DNA from: Hyphochytrium catenoides
Lineage: Eukaryota > Protista > Hyphochytriomycota
Assembly (NCBI GenBank): GCA_900088475.1
Contig: FLMG01003832.1
Location: 14,354-78,353 of the forward strand
Length of the DNA stretch: 64,000 nt
Reading direction: 5' to 3'
Shown here piece after piece: positions 6,941-64,000 of the stretch. The translations under genes were made by a program, and so were the position numbers. Within the stretch, counting starts at the first letter, position 1; each line of letters opens with the position of its first letter. The notes beneath the pieces are model-generated. The model did no database searches. It was not told the origin of the DNA and saw nothing but the letters and a program-made list of their open reading frames with translations.

Positions 6941-7148
6941 CGTTACTTCGGACAGCTGCTGCTCTAGAAGACGAACGAAGACCAAGCGCAGGAACGACGA
7001 GAAGAGAAGAGAAAGAGATCATAAGAGCTGCACCGCGAAGCTCTACTAAGAGGTCCCATGTCATCTTCTACATCATTAATAAGCTTATTATCTATCCTTA
7101 GTACTGAGATCCTCTAAGTCTTTATAGGTCTTCCCAGAGGGAGGGAGG

Positions 7149-7179
<31 letters not shown>

Positions 7180-7232
7180 AGAGAGAGNNNNNNNNNNNNN
7201 NNNNNNNNNNNNNNNNNNNNNNNNNNNNNNNN

Positions 7233-7263
<31 letters not shown>

Positions 7264-8769
7264 AGAGGATGAGAAGATAGGAAAGCACCCTCAGAGATCC
7301 TATCTTCTTTCATCCTCCACCTCAGTCAGAAAGCCCCGTTCCTCTTATCGAGACCACGAGCTTAGAGCCACAACTCCTACCACTTGCTACCCTTTCCTGT
7401 CGGGCGGCCAAGGGCATAGATTGGCCTTTGATGCTACGACTCAGAAGAAGAAGAAGAGAGAGAGAAGAAGAAGAAGTAAATAAATGGAGGGAGGAGAAGA
7501 AGGAGAAGAAGAAGAGAGAGAAGAAGAGGAAGAAGACGAGACAAGAAAACGCTCTTTTATAACGCCTTGGTCGTCTCGTCCTCCTCCGCTCGATCTGCTC
7601 CACGCTTTTCATCAATGAAAGGAAGAGTCAGAGCTGATCACCTCAGTGATAATAATAAGAGGGAGAGAAGAAGGAAGAGGCGGCAAGCCAGAGAAGAAAG
7701 AAAGGTGCCAGCAGCTGCTCAAGAAGAGGAACACGCTTCAAAATCTGAAAGCGCATCTTTTTCCCATGAACCGCCATAGAGATTCTACCACTGTTTTTAC
7801 AAAGAAGACAGGAAAAACTGTACGATGACCAAGAAGAAGAGGAACAAGAGCGACAACTCGTCGTAGGCCAGAAAGAGAAAGAGAAAATAGAGGAGGGAAG
7901 AAAGCAGCGTGGCCGCCGAGAGATGATGATCAACAAGAAGCCGGAGCTGCGGGAAGAACTAGTAGACTACTGCTCCGTATAAAGAGGAATCATAGCACCT
8001 ACAACGACTAACAAAGGAAGAAGTAAACAAGAGAAAAAGCAAGAAGAAGCAGCAGCAGCAGGAGGAGAAGAAGAAGATGATGATGAAAGAGGAAAGAGAG
8101 AACGAAGAAGAAGAGGAGACAAGAAAAGCGCTAACAACGCCTTCGTCTTCCTCGTCGATCTCCTCAGCGATAAGAATAAGGGAAGAGAAGAAGAAGGAAG
8201 AGAAGATGAACCATCAGCCACAATGCCATCACCATCCAAGCTCGACCGCCGCAGCAGCAAGAAAACAAGCAAGAGAACGGTTCCAGCAGCTGCGCAAGAG
8301 GAGAACTCTTCAAATCTCTCTGAAGCGCATGTTCTTCATGATGAATCCCATAGAAAACTCTCGTGTGAAGGCGTAAAGCCTTGGCCAAGCAAGACCAACC
8401 AATTGACCAAGATGCCGAGAAGCATCATCGTCAAGAAGAGCAGCGCGGTCACACTGAAGCTTCAACAAGAAGATGATGTCTCACACAAGCAACAACGAAC
8501 GCCCGGCATGGCTTCCTTCTCTCCAAACGACTCACAAACGAGCGCGACAAACTGCAGCGCTACAGCCTTATAAAGAGCCTTTCTCTTTGCTTCTCTCGCG
8601 ACGGTTGAGCTTGTTGTTGGTGAGGACATGGCTGCTGCTGCCGTCCTCCTTCTTCTTCTCCGCTTATCATTTACTGAGGAAATCAACTATGACTCTTCTT
8701 TTTTTTTACACTGATGAGAAGCATGGAGCAGATTGAGCTGACGAGGAAGAGCCCAAGGCTTTTATAGGC

Positions 8770-54300: not shown

Positions 54301-55159
54301 TTTGTTAAAATTCATTGAGAGCGACTACTACTACTATAACGAAGACGGAGTAAAAAAGAGAAGAATAAGAGGAAGAAGAGGAGAAAAGGAAAGAGAGGAA
54401 GAAGAAGAAGAAGGGGAAGATCAAATGCATATAATAATAGAAGTTACCTGGTGATATTTTCTATCTACTGTTCAAAGATAGAGAGAGAGAACCAGAAGAA
54501 GGGAGGATAATTTGGGAGACCTTTGGTGGAGCTACAGAGGAGGTTCACGCCACGTTGCGACATTGGATAAGAGCTGTCTAGTTGAATTCACTGCATTTGG
54601 TTCTCATACGTTTGGGACTATTCTATATTCGTCCAGTGATTCTTTATAAAAATTAAGGAAGTAAATAAAAATAGTAGGGTACTACTACTATGACTAACTA
54701 AAAAACAGCACAGGATAGAAAAGAAGGCGAGGTAGAAGACAGAGATGAAGATGAGTTAAAGAGAAGAAGAAAAAGAAGAAGAAGACGATGGAGAAGAAGA
54801 GGAAGGAAAATAGGGAAATGAAGAAGAGGCAAGAGGTACAGATTCCTTGACTCTTCAACACACTCTCTCCTCCACCATCATGATCGGGGAAAAGGGAAGA
54901 AGAATCATAATAGCTGAACTCTGCGGCAATAACGGTAGGATACGGAGGGGGAGGAGAAGAAGAGGAGGACGGCGTAGTTGACCAGGAATACGCTTCAGAA
55001 ATTGCAGCGCATTCTCTCCATGAATAGCGAAAGAGATTCTGGTCTAAACAGAGTAGTTCTAAGCGCTTTTCCTCCAAAGTTAAAAATGAAAAAGGAGCAA
55101 TTCTGGAGTGACTAAGGCCTTAGTAGACTACTGTTTAATAAAGTTTTATGTTGGCTTAA

Positions 55160-55183
55160 GGGTGAGTTCACGAGAAACGTGAA
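55160..55183 (+). repeat. Left terminal inverted repeat
   Basis: GGGTGAGTTCACGAGAAACGTGAA, preceded by TTAA. Confidence 0.92.
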
Positions 55184-55900
55184 GGTTTGTATGGGCAGTA
55201 ATGGCAATGGACCCAGAAGCACATGATTCGAAAGGACTCCAAAGGCAGCTGTATCGAGAATCCCTTGATATATAGTATGTCTTTATTCTTCATTAATGGC
55301 TGATATTTGCTTACTATTCTACAATATTTTGTGCATGACCCTCCTTTATAAGGGTCGAAGGAGCCTCTTCTTGTCCACTGAAGCACCAAAAACAACCTCC
55401 ATTCCGCCCTGCTGCATTCGAGTAAAGAGCCGAGTATCAAAAACTTCAGTTAGATAACTGATATATAACCACTAAAATGTATCAATAATGTAATGATTCT
55501 TTGACGGTTATTGATGGGATCGAGGTGGAAAACCATCACTCATTCCATCACCTTCATCACAGCATCATCACACCCTCGAGTTCTATCATTTTGTGTCATC
55601 ATTATCCTCCTCATCATCATCAGGCCAACAACGGCACCACCATCAAATCTCTTCTTGGCCATCCAACCACCCTGTGGGACAACTGGCAAACGAGGCATGA
55701 GTCCTAGACTGCTCGCTCATTATCGTCATAGCGTGATGAATCGATATGCTGCTGCATAGTAGCTGCTAACACTGTCTATTCCGAGAGACAGCAGCACAGA
55801 CACAAGTTGTCTACACCGTGTCTTTGCTCGATTATCATCAAACCAGTAACATCCAAATTGTTACGCCCAACGTCTTGCAACGGTACATGGGTGTGATACA

Positions 55901-58900
55901 ATGAGCTCCTCATCTACTATGTCCTCTGCATCCCCATCATTCATTGTCTATCAGCGCCTGCAGGCGTTTGTCGACAAGAAACCCCATGTGACAATTTCAC
56001 AATTAGCCGAAGCAATGAGTCTATCTCGATATACGCTCACCGCCTTTATGAAGTCTCAAGGAGGTAAGTTCTTGTTCCAGTGAAAAAAAGAAACAATAGC
56101 CGCAGCAAAACTGCCTCCTCCTCGTCCACTAATGAAGCTATGTACCCAGTCTCTGCGTATGCTAAGACCCTAACAGCGGTTCAAAAGTTCCTTGATGATC
56201 AAGAAGGAAGTACGAGCACTCAATCGGAACAATACGGTGTAGGTTTCTCCTGTTGGTTCGTCTGATTGTGCATACACAGTAGCATTCCCCTCTTTCCTTT
56301 TTATAGTTCAACCACTCTCTTTCATCATCATTATGACACTTTCAAGCATAATTGGCGTATGTTAGACCCGACCAGCTAGAACTTACGGACCATATGTTGC
56401 TAGGGGCCAGTTCAGGACCTAACTGGTGAACAAGTCCACTCTTACCGATTCCTATCGCGCGAGGAGTATCTTCAGCGAGTTGCAGAAAATAACTTCAATC
56501 AGAGGGATGAGATAGCTTCACCTGTACCTGTCAGGGTGACTATTTTAACAAGAACACCTCCTAAGACTTCAGGCAGTGACATCAAGCCATGGATTAACAA
56601 CAGACTCTGGATGATTGCTCCGCGGGGCCATAACAACGAATCTCTGCAGCTGTATCCAGGACTTGCCGATGTGACAACTATCCGCGGAGGGAAAAGTCAC
56701 GTTAGGGATCGATCATTCTACTGGAGGGTGGTTGCTAGGGGATGCTCATACAAAAGCATCTGGGAGGGGCCCTTATTTCAATGTATCGACCTGGAGAAGC
56801 CGGCTGATGCCATATTTGAAGGCAAATCGCCAACCCAAATGTGGAAGAACGCGGCTGAAGCATATGGAAGACCATGGCAGTTCCAGCATGGTCGCGCTTT
56901 GCTGGGCTTCCTCGATGAGGGGATATGCATTGCTATTAGCGGTGCAGGAGGTGACAAAGAATTAGATGGAGATGACGATGGGGAGCTAAGGCTGCCCATG
57001 AGTACAAGGTTTGGACGACTAAGTCAGCTAAGTATCCGCCGCAAGCGGGACTTGGCAAGACTGATCCACGAAAAACTGCATAGTCTAATGACTGAAATCC
57101 ATCCAGACTCTCCCATAGAAGCTTTTAAGGTGCTCGTCGAGTTCAACAAGTATCGAAAGATATGGCTAGAGGGTGCCATAGGTGAAGAAGCTATATTGGA
57201 GTCTCTTTCAGCCGAAGCTCCTGTTGTGAGCGCGATATGTCAGGCCTTCAAGAATCTGGAGAAGTCTGGGGACCGGCTGCAAATGGGGTCCTTGATAGCT
57301 CCATATCTGCCTATCTCTGTAGTCTCTAAGCTTTTAGGTGTGGGAGCGACTACCGTCCATAAAATGCGGACCTACGCTAGGCGACACGGAGCCGGAGCTC
57401 GGGTGGCTGCAGAGACGATTAAGCGTGACCGCCTTCAGGGAAGAGACCTCCTGGTCAAAGAGTTCTTGGAGGACCAAGATGTTCTGTACGCAAGCCCCAC
57501 TCTACGGGACGGCAAACAGGTCATCTACAAAATGCATAACGATAACGACCTCTATTCACTGTATAGGTCTTATTGCATAGACATTGGCCGGGATGATGAA
57601 GTTATCAAGAAAACGAAGTTTCGTTCTCTCATCAAGAAAATGAAGCTTCGCAAATGGGACCCCAAGTCATGTCTCTGTAATCAGTGTGCACGGTATGGCT
57701 TCAAGACCTTTGAGGATCTCCGGCAGATTGTGTCCGAGACGTATGAGATTATAGCCTCCTCTGATGAAGCCATACCGGAGGTCGCCAGAGATCGTGATGA
57801 CGCGTTAGAGGCCATAAAGGCTGTACAGAACTATTATTGGAATGGTTTCAAGCAAGATCTTCAACTATCTTCCGTAAGTGGACTGCTATGTCTTAGACAT
57901 GGTCTTTCTTTGGACGATAAAGTGGATAAGGACGGTCCCTTTTCTCACCGCTGCGATCATGAACACAACTCAAGCACGACGGAAGGGTGAGCAGTTGCAT
58001 TAATGTTTGTTTGTGAGATGCCATTAGCTTCACGATGACGGCTTCTCTTATTCATTGTTACTCATTTGCCCCCATCACTGATTCCTTATCCCGCAGATGT
58101 GATCTAAGATCGCAGCTAGAAACGCTTACTTGGAGATTGCTTGGCAAGGCAAAGGAGTTAAGCGAGCGACCGACATCAACAACCCTTAATCGTAGGGTCA
58201 TAGACAATCTGAACGAAAGACTACTGAAGTGTGAGCAAAATCTAGAGTTCTATATTGCCCATCAAGCACGCAAAAGATTCTCTACACTCGTCAAATTAGC
58301 AGTGCGTGATGGTCTTTCTCTGAATCAAGCTGTAGTCATCATCGACCATAAAATGAAGTGGTTGCCACGATGGCATAGAGAGACACAAGCGCAGTACTTC
58401 GGGAAGTCAGGAATCACAATTTTTGGTGCTGTTGTTCTCTACAAGGACGATAGCGGTGAGTGTATGAGTTTGAGTACAACCCTACTTCGTCAGAATCTTA
58501 CTTTCATCATCTCTTGGCTGCTGCTAGGGCACTTCAATCTCATCAATATCCGCGCATTTAGCGACGAGAGCCACCAGGATTGGTCTCAGTCTCTGGTTCT
58601 CTTATCAAGTTGCCTACAGGAGCTATCCATAGCAACTGAGGGAAGAATCACCGAAGTTATTATCCAAAGCGATGGTGCTGGCAATTACTCCGGAACGGGG
58701 TTCTTCCTTGGACTCCCTTCAGCAGCTCCAGCAGGAATGAAGATTATCGGGCATCTGATCACAGAGGCAGGCGGTGGAAAGGATCGGGTAGATCAAGACT
58801 TTGCTGACTTGGGAAGACAACTTCTGAAGTTTCTGAATTCGGGTCATGATTTGGTCTCCTCAAAAGATTTATTAGAGGCCGCAAACTTCGAGCTCACAAG

Positions 58901-60515
58901 GAAAGAAACTTCAATCAACATTGAAGTCGTCTTGGAGCGTCAAGAAGACACAAAAATTCTCACTCAAGCTGGCATCAAGGACTATTACTGGCGAGAATAT
59001 TTTAGTACCCCGTTAAACAATGAGCGGTCCCACGCTGAAGAAACCAGCAACACTACTAGTGAAGAGGGCGGGGCTGGCCTGGGACAGGTTGAGGCCAGAC
59101 TCTACAATTTCTATGGCATTGGGACCGGAAAGCACCTTGACCGTGCTAGTTTGATGTCGTTGGCTCCAGATGTGTAAGAGCTATCAATAAATCTGGCTGC
59201 TTATAGGAGTAAAGGTGAGAAGATCTTTAATCAAGTGTATGTCTCCTCGCTGGGCTCTATCGCTAAAAGCTGATCACCCGTTATCGTTCTTCTCTTTCGT
59301 CCTTTTGCGTGCGTCTGTCTTCCTTTAAGGTATTAAGGGGCGGGAAGATCGAGCATCCATTTTCAGGCCAGCTCAACAAATGTCCCAGGCGGACAAAGAA
59401 GAAGCCCAACGGAAGAGAGGAGAGAAGCAGAACAAGCGCAGAAAAAGTGGGGTTGGCGATTCTCTCAACCTTAACATCAGGGACAGAATCCGGTAGGATC
59501 ATCATTGCCATATACTCTTTAAGTTTTTTATTTTACTCTTGTTGTTTAATGGATATAACCTGTCGTACCTGGGTCATAGAAGAAGCGCAACGACATCAGC
59601 ACCGACACGAAGTGAGAGCGCTATGGACGAAGAGGGCGAGACAGGTTGTTCAGACCTTTTTGACGGCAGCTATCAAAGTGGCGACGGAGATAATGAGTCC
59701 GTATCCCTTTCTGACCTTGTCCTAACCGCAGAAGAGTTTGATGCTATGGTAGGTCTTATCTTTCTGACTTCGTTGATAGTTAGATGTTAAATTCATTAGT
59801 TGATCTATCCTTCTTGGCAGCTGAAGGAAGCCGAAGATTTAGAACTAGACGAAGGGGATGACTATTACTACGACAATGAGCTTCAAGAAGGTAACGCAGC
59901 AGCACCCAAAGAAGGCTCCTCATCAGTGAGGCCGGATAACGACGAGGTGAGCCCTTGCGTCATGTTTATGAAGCCTTTTTACCCTATAGTGTCTGACCAT
60001 CGGAAGTTATTGTATGGATGCTTTAGACAATAAGCCAGTATTATCGCGTGGGGCTCTATCGGAAGCCTGTTCGCAAAGGAAGCAAACGCTTCACAACAGA
60101 ACAAGTCTCTTTTCTATTATCCCAGTACGACGCTCATGGATCTCGCGTCAATGAGCGTCAGGCGCATGAGAGGATGGCTCAGCTCTTCACAATCGAAAAT
60201 GGTAAGCAATCCTTACTGCTCACTGAGGCCCAGATCAAGTCTTGGTTCTCCGCCGAGACTGCCCGGAGGAAAAAGAAGCCCACCGCTGCCGTAGGAGGTG
60301 AAGGTCAATATGGGCATACTGAGAGCTCATTGGAAAGGGACCGACTTCCCGATGTGAATGTGCTCGAAGGTGAGACACAACCTGACGAAGTTGATCCTAA
60401 AATAAATCAAAAGCGCCAGCCTGTGGTGGACAAACCCAGTGCACGGAGACCACCTTTGTGCAAGAAGTGTCGCGCTCCAATGAAGGGTCACAGGCATGGA
60501 TGTGAGCCTGCTTAG
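55901..60515 (+). CDS. Spliced Sola3-like DDD transposase (~1,290 aa) with one in-frame TAA at 59175
   Basis: Phase-consistent exons: 55901-56063, 56150-56236 (or 56242), 56307-56356, 56404-57986, 58097-58455, 58528-59214, 59330-59492, 59580-59748, 59821-59946, 60027-60515. Core motifs: AHQAR, VVIIDHKMKWLPRWHRETQAQYFGKSGI (D at 58344), HQDW, IIQSDGAGNY (D at 58671), ITEAGGGKDRVD (D at 58782/58791), NSGHDL. Cys/His motifs: CLCNQC, CLRHGLS...CDHEH. C-terminus: RFTTEQVSFL...LTEAQIKSWFS and CKKC...H...C. The 5' exons are less certain than the core. Confidence 0.85.
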
Positions 60516-60696
60516 CGGGAAAGACTTCCTAGCTCATTGTAATATTCAATAAGCACTAGGGTTGTGATAAACCGAAAAGGAGATTATTTGCCCCAACGTC
60601 TTCCATCCTTTGTTATTTTTGAACGACTGGAGGTAAGCTTAGAGACTCAATAAGCCCAAGCAAGTCAAACAAGGCATATTTATCACCCGGTTGTTA

Positions 60697-61902
60697 TCAA
60701 TAAGATTGACTTTCTTCTACTCCAGGAGAAGCTTTGGCTCTTAGATATGACGCCAGTATTTTGAACTCCCGTTGTAGGGAGCTCACTCCATGACAGATTG
60801 TCTTTACTTCCGCAAGCATGAGCGTTTGGAATTCGGTCATGGTATCGGACTTGATGACAGGTCCTGATGGTCGGGAAGTCTTAGCCTCGCCCAAATGCTC
60901 TTGTCTTCCTCGCCTCCGCGATCGGTCACAGTTCGTCACCATCCTCTCCAGATCAGTATCATCGCCACTGCAGTAGATTTGCATTAGACGTCTCAAGCTG
61001 CTAGATAACCCGGTACTACCATTAGACTGAGCAAGAGAGTCGTTAGCATTCATTGTTTAAGTATGCGGAGTTGGTATAACCACTCAATACCTTGTATTCC
61101 TTGGACAGATAAGCCCATTTGTTCTTGATAGACTTGACATCCCTGTCCACTTTCGCCCTCTTGCGAAGGGCTTGCTGAAAGCTCTTCCATATCTCAGCCA
61201 TCTGGAGATTGCTTAGATCTTGGCTGTCAAATACCCGCTTCCATTCCGTTCTCAGCAGGATTAGAGCTTGCGTATCCTCCTCTGACCAATTGACGCGCTG
61301 TCTAGTCTTCTTCTTTTTGGTGCCTCGTTTAGTCGGCTCTGTGCTTTGGCGTTTTCTCGTGGAAGTTGCCAGATGTGCCTACCATGACAAATAACCGTGT
61401 CAAATAGAATGGAAGTCTGCGGGTTGGCTTGAAGTGTAAGAACTCTATACCTGGTCCTCGTTTCCTACAGGACCTCCAACTGGCTCCGTTTCTAACTGAG
61501 CTAACAGGATGGGTTCAAACCGATAAGCCCGCATATGCTGGTAAGAGAGGTTGCTGCTTAGCATGACGGACTACGAATGGTTTACATACATAGATCTTGA
61601 CGTTGGGCTTCAGGCTCTCTATCAGAAGTATCTGACGAGAATGGACTTGATGGCTGAATCGCGTTATTATCTTCTGTCTCTCGTCCTGGTGGTGACTCTT
61701 TGTCGCCGCCATTTTCCTTCGGTACCTGCTTGTCTTTAGGCTTTGGTCGGGGCATGCTGAGGATAGGAGCCGGTCCGTGCGACGGTACTTGCAAGGCTAA
61801 TTATTCGCTTTTCGTTGGCAAGACAGGTGGCAGCTCAAGCAGTTCAGCAGATTGACGATAAAAGCGATCAGAGGCTTCATGCAATCGCCTTTCTGCCTCC
61901 GC
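60697..61902 (-). CDS. Transposon-borne Myb/SANT-like (trihelix) DNA-binding protein, spliced, with lesion(s); start not located
   Basis: Exon 61378-61091 (96 codons, ag..gt) reads KKKKTRQRVNWSEEDTQALILLRTEWKRVFDSQDLSNLQMAEIWKSFQQALRKRAKVDRDVKSIKNKWAYLSKEYK, with the three spaced Trp of Myb/trihelix domains. Upstream exons 61500-61451 and 61902-61590 are phase-consistent, with one in-frame TAA at 61803-61801. The downstream exon ends at 60697 with an amphipathic helix (EFQTLMLAEVKTICHGVSSLQREFKILASYL). Confidence 0.82.
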
Positions 61903-62080
61903 CTACCGCCAACAAGATCCACCGCTTTTACAAAAAGTTCCTACTGTACGATACAATCCGCTACATCACCATCGACTGGTGTACATAGGCATAGAGTGTT
62001 ACGCCTATAGCTGACTGGGAGACCCTGTGCTTCCCTATAAGACTCTACAGCAGTCCATACTCCTGTTCCGAAGCAAAATT

Positions 62081-62599
62081 CTACCCTCTCGACTGGATCA
62101 ACCATAGACATAGCGTGGTAGCGTAAAGCTGACTGGAGGTTATTGTGCTTTGATTTAGGACCCTATAGTCAAGCAAGTTCTCTTGTTTAGTCGGCCTACC
62201 CTCTCGACTGGATCAACCATAGGTATAAGGTGGTAGCGTAAGCTGACTGGAGGTTATTGTGCTTTGATATAGGACCCTATAGTCAAGCAAGTTCTCTTAT
62301 TTAGCCTGGCCTACCCTCTCGACTGGATCAACCATAGACATAGCGTGGTAGCGTAAAGCTGACTGGAGGTTATACTGCTTTGATATAGGACCCTATAGTC
62401 AAGCAAGTTCTCTTGTTTAGCCGGCCTACCCTCTCGACTGGATCAACCATAGCCATAGCGTGGTAGCGTAAAGCTGACTGGAGGTTATACAGTTTTGATA
62501 TAGGACCCTATAGTCAAGCAAGTTCTCTTGTTTGGTCGGCCTACCCTCTCGACTGGATCAACCATAGACATAGCGTGGTAACGTAAAGCTGACTGGAGG
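62081..62599. repeat. 115-bp tandem array (4.5 copies) in the right subterminal region of the transposon
   Basis: ctaccctctcgactggatcaaccatag starts at 62081, 62196, 62311, 62426 and 62541. Degenerate flanking copies lie at ~61970-62080 and ~62655-62705. Confidence 0.96.
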
Positions 62600-63032
62600 C
62601 TCTAGACTGTAACATGCTTGTTCTCCTATCGTACTGTACGACATACAGCGTGTTACATCGACTGGATAGATTATGGGGGTACACTGTAATACTGAAGCTG
62701 ACTAAAACATGACCTTGCTTACACCCTGTACCATAATGAGGTGCCACATTATCGACCCGAGTAGGATGACTCGAGTAGTGCTCGAGGAAGCAGCCCCTCT
62801 TCAGACGAAATTGAGCACGGAATTTGGAAATGAGAGAATCCCTAACGGTCAAATTCTGACCCATGGACATGGGTGGGCGAGCAATAATCACCACAAGGCT
62901 TTGCCACTCCATTAGGGATAATGACCCCGTCGAACCTCCCATATCAAAAGCTATACAAACTCTGCACACGAGATTTGGGTTCTACAAACAGTAAATGTTA
63001 GAAAGTGGGCACCAAATTACTGCAAAATTTTG

Positions 63033-63056
63033 TTCGCGTTTCTCGCGAACTCGCCC
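63033..63056 (-). repeat. Right terminal inverted repeat
   Basis: Reverse complement is GGGCGAGTTCGCGAGAAACGCGAA, followed on the + strand by TTAA. Confidence 0.92.
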
Positions 63057-63209
63057 TTAATAGAACTACTACTAGTCAGACGAAGCTGGAGAAGAAGAAG
63101 AAAAAGGATCAGGGAGACAGACATAGGAGACAATAATGATGAAGATTAGGAAAAAGAAGAAGGAAGAGTTGCCAAGAGCTACAAAGCCTTGGATTCTTCT
63201 TCTTCAGCT

Positions 63210-63890
63210 CTAGTTCCACTGTTTATGGTTCTGCATAGAGTTCCAGCTAGGCCGATATTCTTATGTTGAACCATCACCAAGTCGCTGAGGGATACGCCTA
63301 AGAAGTATCACCAAACCGTAAACAGTCTCCCTCTGCAGTTTTGGTACTAGAAGCAGGAGAAATGAAGACCGCTGCTGACCTGTATCTACGAGAGCATATA
63401 ACCTCCTGTTGAATCTCATAAGGTGAATGAGTGTCTCCCAGCCTTGAACTGTCTTCTCTCACAGTTCTCGACCAGAAAGCAGGACAAATGCGCGCTTCTT
63501 GTAGCTGCTGTCGGTCTGTATCTATGAACAAGTAGTTCTACTGTCAATGTGGAGGCTCTGCATAGAGTTCAGCTCGGTCAATATTCTATGGCGGCCATCA
63601 CACTGTTGGGGAGGGACACGCCTAAGAAGTATCACCAAACCATAAACTGTCTCCCTCGGCAGTTCTTGTAACAAAGCGGGAGAAACAAAGACGGCTGTTG
63701 GACTGAATGAGCATGGTTCTACTACTGTTAGTTTGGAGGCTTTGAAGAGTCAGATAGGCCCACAACCTCATGGTTGGACAACAAAGAGGGGATGATGAGT
63801 TCTCGCAGCCATGAACTGCCCTTGCTTTATAGACTTCACTCGTCTCTGGAGGCAGGAGAAATGAGCGCTACTTGTAGCTTTTGGTCCGTC
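63210..63890. repeat. Diverged ~324-bp tandem duplication with a third partial copy
   Basis: ctctgcatagagtt...cgcctaagaagtatcaccaaacc.taaac.gtctccctc, with agaagtatca at 63301 and 63625. Confidence 0.85.
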
Positions 63891-64000
63891 TCTAATAAGA
63901 ATAATAATATGCTAGACCAAATGTCACATGTTGAGGATCAAACTTTTCTCCCACGTTCTTTCATCTGACTCTTTGTGGTTGTTCTTTTACTTTGGTCTTA

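Follow-up and report, generated by a model that had tools for sequence, protein, structure and literature searches.

The window analyzed here, a stretch of 64,000 nucleotides of Hyphochytrium catenoides DNA (contig FLMG01003832.1), contains a DNA transposon of the Sola3 type that holds two genes, a transposase gene with a DDD catalytic core on the plus strand and, convergent with it on the minus strand, a spliced gene that is predicted to encode a Myb/SANT protein of the trihelix type. The element extends over 55156-63060, measures 7,905 bp, and forms one unit bounded by terminal inverted repeats (TIRs) and a TTAA target-site duplication (TSD) (Table 1). It is an apparently intact cut-and-paste Sola3 transposon that would have been inserted at a TTAA that it duplicated, and we think it probable, if far from assured, that the Myb gene is a lineage-specific acquisition, carried either as an accessory to the transposase or as a passenger. 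Since the Myb gene lies within the mobile unit, it presumably moved with the element at its last insertion.

Results

Ends of the element and its target site

An inverted-repeat search over 54500-64000 returned 55156-55183 / 63033-63060 as the longest inverted pair, and a degenerate pattern of the TIR found two sites in the window, which are the two ends of the element, and none in 100 dinucleotide-preserving shuffles. The two ends match at 21 of 24 positions and have TTAA directly outside on both sides, in agreement with the original prediction, which had described a complete element with TIRs and a TTAA TSD between 55156 and 63060. The TTAA is a TSD rather than a part of the TIR, because the bases outward of the two TTAAs do not repeat. 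At each of the three TIR mismatches the right end has CpG where the left end has TpG or CpA, a pattern that deamination of methylcytosines in the left end would produce; CpG depletion is no stronger in the element than elsewhere in the window, with an observed/expected ratio of 0.75 for the whole element, which is not below the 0.61 of the rest of the window. A second short match, GCAGTAAT, lies about 33 nt inward of the TIR at both ends, and beyond it the subterminal regions have no common word of at least 10 nt in inverted orientation. The right side of the element also contains a tandem array of a 115-bp unit, which lies in the interval from the Myb gene's 5' side to the right TIR, and nothing resembling this array was seen at the left end.

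Table 1. Features of the Sola3-type element, with positions numbered from the first letter of the window.
Feature	Position	Strand	Remarks
Left TTAA target-site duplication	55156-55159	.	Identical TTAA at the other end
Left TIR, 24 nt	55160-55183	+	Starts GGG; 21/24 complementary to 63033-63056
Sola3-type DDD transposase gene, ~1,280 codons	55901-60515	+	From stop-free segments, GT-AG introns and homology; splicing inferred
Transposase exons, 5' part (proposed)	55901-56063, 56177-56238, 56404-57986, 58028-58455, 58528-~59173	+
Transposase exons, 3' part (proposed)	59330-59492, 59580-59748, 59821-59946, 60027-60512	+
Catalytic core with DDD triad	58344-58793	+	D codons 58344-58346, 58671-58673, 58791-58793
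72-nt intron within the catalytic ORF, in frame (predicted)	58456-58527	+	GTGAGT...CTAG
Last transposase exon	60027-60515	+	C-terminal homeodomain-like helix-turn-helix and Cys/His-rich tail; conserved in relatives
Myb/SANT-like gene, 242 codons, 3 exons	60697-61755	-	Exons 61755-61590, 61323-61091, 61026-60700; predicted splicing
Myb middle exon	61091-61323	-	KKKK run and Myb/SANT trihelix domain; Pfam Myb_DNA-bind_4
Tandem array, 4.5 copies of a 115-bp unit	62081-62599	.	TRF score 903, 93% matches
Right TIR	63033-63056	-	Pairs with 55160-55183
Right TTAA target-site duplication	63057-63060	.	Directly outside the right TIR

A DDD catalytic core of the Sola3 type

The catalytic core lies in a 380-aa open reading frame (ORF) at 58035-59177, in which the triad is formed by D104, D213, and D253. 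These three aspartates are invariant in an alignment of 37 sequences of the family, and H76 and K249 are likewise invariant. An AlphaFold model built on the family alignment (pLDDT 82.4, pTM 0.80) has the strand and helix order of an RNase H-like fold, with the first aspartate on strand 1, the second just after strand 4, and the third at the start of the following helix. When the model was compared with the Protein Data Bank (PDB) by Foldseek, the matches were the P element and Mos1 transposases, retroviral integrase cores, Argonaute PIWI domains, and RNase H, with E-values near 1e-3 and probabilities up to 1.0. As modeled, the transposase core is of the DDD type on an RNase H-like fold.

The superfamily is assigned as Sola3 because published reference blocks match. 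These blocks, for Sola1-1_AP, Sola2-1_HM, Sola3-1_HM, and the C. remanei Sola3 (CRE_08425), were those in the supplement of Majorek et al. 2014 (PMC3985635). In ungapped BLOSUM62 comparison with the D104 region, the first Sola3 block scores 53 for Sola3-1_HM (12/31 identities) and 51 for C. remanei (10/31), scores that were reached by none of 2000 shuffles, whereas the blocks of Sola1 and Sola2 reach 16, elsewhere in the sequence and no better than chance (111/2000 and 189/2000 shuffles, respectively, do as well). The second (SD-A--Y) and third (GKD) Sola3 blocks agree with the transposase as well, and the blocks common to the transposase and Sola3 can be written D-x-x-x-K-x-L/I-P ... Q-x-x-Y/F-F/Y-G-K-x-G-I/M-S, S-D-x-A-x-x-Y, and G-K-D. 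In addition, the 4-bp duplication, the TIRs, and the length of the element all fall within the published description of Sola elements as DDD transposons that are 2-9 kb long and have 4-bp TSDs and TIRs of 11-1124 bp (PMC10741241). The evidence supports a Sola3-type transposase and not one of the Harbinger, piggyBac, or Kolobok types, in agreement with the earlier claim of a Sola3-like transposase unrelated to that of Harbinger.

Two other superfamilies have the TTAA in common with the element. Kolobok (the Kol0 group with KolX), which is found in diatoms and has two proteins in its founding families, has a TTAA-specific duplication and 5'-RR...YY-3' termini (PMC9587614), and the element here, which reads TTAA/GGG...CCC/TTAA, has such termini too. 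Because they are common to Kolobok and to this element, the TTAA and the RR...YY termini do not discriminate between them; however, D213 and D253 are 40 residues apart without the C/DxxH motif between them that is part of the definition of Kolobok (PMC9587614). This catalytic motif and the match of the core to the Sola3 references rule out Kolobok. The likeness to piggyBac is limited to the TTAA target duplication, and piggyBac was rejected since there is no DDE_Tnp_1_7 match and the termini here are GGG...CCC. Those of piggyBac are CCC...GGG, the opposite orientation.

The transposase gene

The transposase gene contains three long stop-free stretches (56404-57987, 58017-59174, and 60027-60512), and one protein family matches all of them. 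A HMMER search with the 380-aa ORF against 1.84 billion representatives gave 488 matches, and the homologues, aligned back on the element with tblastn, cover 56554-57990, 58035-59177, and 60048-60300. Joined via canonical GT-AG introns, the pieces are predicted to give one frame without stops that ends with a TAG at 60513-60515, so that the plus-strand transposase ends at 60515 as originally proposed and its multi-exon frame is open. The model requires very short introns, one of 41 nt at 57987-58027 and possibly one of 43-49 nt after 59172, and the joining of exons and introns within 59172-59329 is tentative; a possible 17-nt micro-exon (59220-59236), with weak similarity, would restore an I-K-C motif of the relatives P0001, P0003, and P0032. 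The 72-nt intron proposed within the catalytic ORF causes no break in the ORF list because it is in frame; the residues that it would encode have low pLDDT in the AlphaFold model, and the relatives L009-L011, which are genomic contigs and represent the closest relatives, show a gap at this site.

The last exon matches the C-terminal parts of the relatives P0004, P0011, P0029, P0039, and P0044, and its matches to homeodomains are weak (Pfam, E 0.019; engrailed in the PDB, E 0.007). After the homeodomain-like domain, the extreme C-terminus of the transposase (60420-60512) forms a small Cys/His cluster, C-x2-C ... H-x-H-x-C. Pfam recognizes no family in the transposase or in 37 of its relatives, and in the 484-aa ORF over 56600-56915 there was no Pfam match at E up to 1, a FYR-like domain not being found. 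A resemblance to DUF7869/ISAzo13 among the Atlas neighbors was not confirmed by hmmscan.

The convergent Myb/SANT gene

The minus-strand gene ends with a TGA at 60699-60697 and meets the transposase gene tail to tail, with 181 bp between the two stop codons, which bears out the arrangement that had been put forward. Its identity comes from the stop-free stretch 61378-61091, which matches the whole of the Pfam domain Myb_DNA-bind_4 with 37.1 bits (E 4e-9), against a curated cut-off of 27 bits, so that the Pfam comparison recommended for the minus-strand protein came out positive. The Atlas neighbors of the exon belong to the Myb_DNA-bind_4/3/5 clusters, which are generic for Myb/SANT, and the domain aligns end to end with that of the Arabidopsis GT-1 trihelix protein (2JMW), with a weak E-value of 0.07. 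A single-sequence model of the exon has three helices, at low confidence (mean pLDDT 61.5, pTM 0.32). Because this exon lacks a start codon of its own it escapes the ORF list, in which, as had been noticed, it is missing except for one 52-aa piece at 61043-61201.

The spliced model has 242 codons and no internal stop. Its second intron, of 64 nt (GTATTG..CTAAC..CAG), joins 61323-61091 to 61026-60700 in phase, and downstream of it are 109 further stop-free codons that lead to the TGA. The first intron, of 266 nt, has a GTATGT donor at 61589, a CTAAAC, and an AG acceptor at 61324, and the first exon (61755-61590), which is joined in phase and gives 55 codons from an ATG, is the least certain part of the model. 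The predicted protein would consist of an acidic, serine-rich N-terminus, the KKKK run, the trihelix domain, and a helical tail. GC3 does not set the genes of the element apart from the host ORFs. Judged from the letters, this is a real-looking spliced Myb/SANT gene of the trihelix type that lies within the TIR/TTAA unit.

We think it quite improbable that the minus-strand gene is non-functional, that is, a decayed or chance Myb-like exon in non-coding transposon DNA to which splicing has been over-fitted. Such an account would agree with a first exon and a junction that were picked from frame and splice consensus only, with the 109-aa C-terminal tail, in which neither Pfam nor the Atlas recognizes a family, and with two weak searches that found no homologue of the Myb protein, one of them word-based and covering only proteins of 53-168 aa. 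It would not explain why the Pfam score exceeds the curated cut-off by 10 bits across the whole domain, nor why a 64-nt intron with GT, CTAAC, and CAG should join two open frames in phase and add 109 codons free of stops.

Another account is that the Myb gene arrived after the insertion, as a nested element of the Harbinger type or of another type that has lost its ends and transposase, or through a local rearrangement, and that it has never been mobilized by the Sola3 transposase. Among the findings that had been named as able to overturn the two-gene interpretation was a nested Harbinger around the Myb gene, with TIRs and a 3-bp TSD of its own; it was looked for and not found. Within 60300-63060, the only inverted pair that brackets the Myb gene is 60573-60592 / 61795-61814, a weak repeat of 20 nt with 75% match; however, it is one of 23 pairs of such quality in 2.7 kb, which is chance level, and no direct repeat, of 3 bp or another length, is found at its outer edges. 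None of the ORFs in the element has a Pfam match to a Harbinger-type transposase (DDE_Tnp_4 / Plant_tran), nor is there a remnant of any other second transposase in the element. Nesting of a Harbinger element was rejected on these observations, and, as no contig of the genome runs is at least 80% like the Myb region, a later arrival of the gene by any of these routes strikes us as very doubtful.

Copy number and relatives

Depth and contig comparisons were made with Logan contigs from three DNA runs of the organism. The contigs cover the element without differences, though the runs are not independent support because they are probably the source of the assembly, and contig depth, 194.5 within the element, is 194.6 in the flank. 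In the three runs, 60600-62000, the region of the Myb gene, is covered by no other contig with at least 80% likeness, and neither a second copy of the element nor an empty insertion site was identified in the window or in the runs. The element is present as a single copy, and in the DNA runs the Myb gene has no second occurrence. Short contigs of the genome runs match 60116-60307, 57421-57494, and 58329-58413 at ~82-87%, the first of these at about twice the single-copy depth, and these matches point to other, diverged families of the Sola3 type in the same genome.

The closest proteins are three fragments with ~50% identity, all from run SRR22387817; their contigs, of 1.5-1.8 kb, are uninformative on the Myb gene because they end before any neighboring gene. 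Among more distant relatives, L001 (JGI metagenome contig Ga0621872_41875, 1-7930) is a complete Sola3-type element with TIRs of 430 nt (56-488 / 7067-7498) and a single gene, for a transposase of 1,054 aa; its flanks are ATAT and ATAA, without a clean TTAA duplication. The element of H. catenoides differs from this complete relative in its second, convergent gene for a Myb/SANT protein. In four relatives with usable flanks (L001, L002, L007, and L008) no Myb-like ORF was found by tblastn, tblastx, and Pfam. The single-gene relatives have the transposase upstream region, the core, and the C-terminal homeodomain-like domain in common with the element, and these same modules imply that the transposase has DNA-binding equipment of its own. 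A scan of JGI metagenomes with a transposase peptide found nothing, and a scan with the TIR pattern returned four matches, attributable to chance, that had neither TTAA nor any other similarity.

Discussion

The transposase appears to be built of an N-terminal helix-turn-helix, a Cys/His region, the RNase H-like DDD core, and the C-terminal homeodomain-like domain, and, if active, it would recognize the 24-nt GGG...CCC inverted ends and would excise and insert at TTAA unaided. The Myb gene is most likely an accessory or passenger DNA-binding gene rather than one for a second subunit of the Harbinger kind, conserved and obligatory. Should the gene have a role, its product would most likely bind DNA in or near the element, for example at the 115-bp array or at the ends, and aid or regulate transposition or transcription. 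We favor a lineage-specific acquisition because relatives keep the regions of the transposase without the Myb gene, and because neither a second TIR pair nor a second TSD surrounds the gene.

One of the closest comparators is PIF/Harbinger, whose elements have two genes, one for the transposase and one for a separate Myb/SANT-like trihelix DNA-binding protein that binds the TIRs and interacts with the transposase (PMC9179366). The element described here is similar in that its second gene also encodes a domain of this type, but its transposase is unrelated, with a DDD core of the Sola3 type, and its duplication is the 4-bp TTAA where that of Harbinger is 3 bp. Binding of ends and interaction with the transposase are traits of the Harbinger proteins, and what can be said of the Myb protein here comes from its sequence. 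A single origin of the pairing of transposase and Myb protein, within the Harbinger transposons, has been inferred (PMC9179366).

It is in this light that a true two-component Sola3 lineage has to be considered, in which the Myb/SANT protein would bind the ends or subterminal repeats, recruit or import the transposase, and be needed for transposition or boost it. We regard such a system as possible but unlikely. It would suit the presence of the gene, intact and with predicted splicing, inside the TIR/TTAA unit, the run of lysines, which may be a nuclear localization signal, and the domain, which is of the type of the Harbinger partner proteins that bind TIRs and interact with the transposase (PMC9179366). 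Even the failure to find homologues would suit it, since Harbinger's Myb-like proteins are so divergent that their homologues are hard to find (PMC9179366), and so would the 115-bp array, which lies between the gene and the right end. On the other side, the element is present just once, no Myb gene was seen in any relative, the transposase keeps three modules of DNA-binding type that are common to its single-gene relatives, and the subterminal regions have no common repeated motif beyond the TIR. The undescribed two-component Sola lineage of the original prediction is not borne out by a single copy and by four relatives without the gene. We are also doubtful of the more specific proposal that a Sola3 lineage recruited a Myb/SANT subunit independently of PIF/Harbinger, giving a two-protein transposition system in which the trihelix protein, bound to the ends or to the 115-bp array, would bring in the transposase or activate it.

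Several considerations weigh against lineage-specific acquisition of an accessory or passenger by a Sola3 element. The gene is intact, it has introns of its own, and it is in a Harbinger-like position, features that are as compatible with a functional partner as with a passenger. It is possible that the immediate sub-lineage has the Myb gene, since the relatives with ~50% identity are on contigs that are too short, and the other relatives in the comparison are either distant, at 22-33% identity, or partial. The searches for Myb homologues were weak, the word-based one covering only proteins of 53-168 aa. A defect in the transposase is possible at the junction 59172-59330. Finally, TTAA is the target preference that Bao et al. 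reportedly described for the Sola3 group in 2009, and what the paper cited above for Sola elements gives is a TSD of 4 bp.

The pairing of a transposase with a Myb protein is treated as a hallmark of one superfamily, PIF/Harbinger. If a second, unrelated transposase family had such a partner, it would mean that this division of labor can arise more than once, and it would provide a natural comparison for the recruitment of separate DNA-binding subunits. It would also bear on domestication, as pairs of transposase and Myb protein derived from Harbinger elements now serve their hosts as chromatin factors. If the gene is a passenger only, an intact gene with introns, for a DNA-binding protein, that was moved in a TTAA-specific element would still be a clean case of gene carriage, in a rare superfamily and in a stramenopile genome. 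With one copy only and with splicing that is predicted, the two-gene pairing is a lead and not a result.

Additional observations

A degenerate additional copy of the 115-bp unit begins near 62009, ahead of the array. The contigs of each of the three DNA runs are interrupted within the right TIR (62551-63059 / 63030-63399, with a 30-nt overlap). Another contig matches from 63069 on, and its preceding 255 letters are unlike the window and end in a TTAGGG-like stretch; it has no clean match to the left flank, and it may represent a paralog of the flank, a version of the flank without the element, or a branch of the assembly graph that a repeat has caused.

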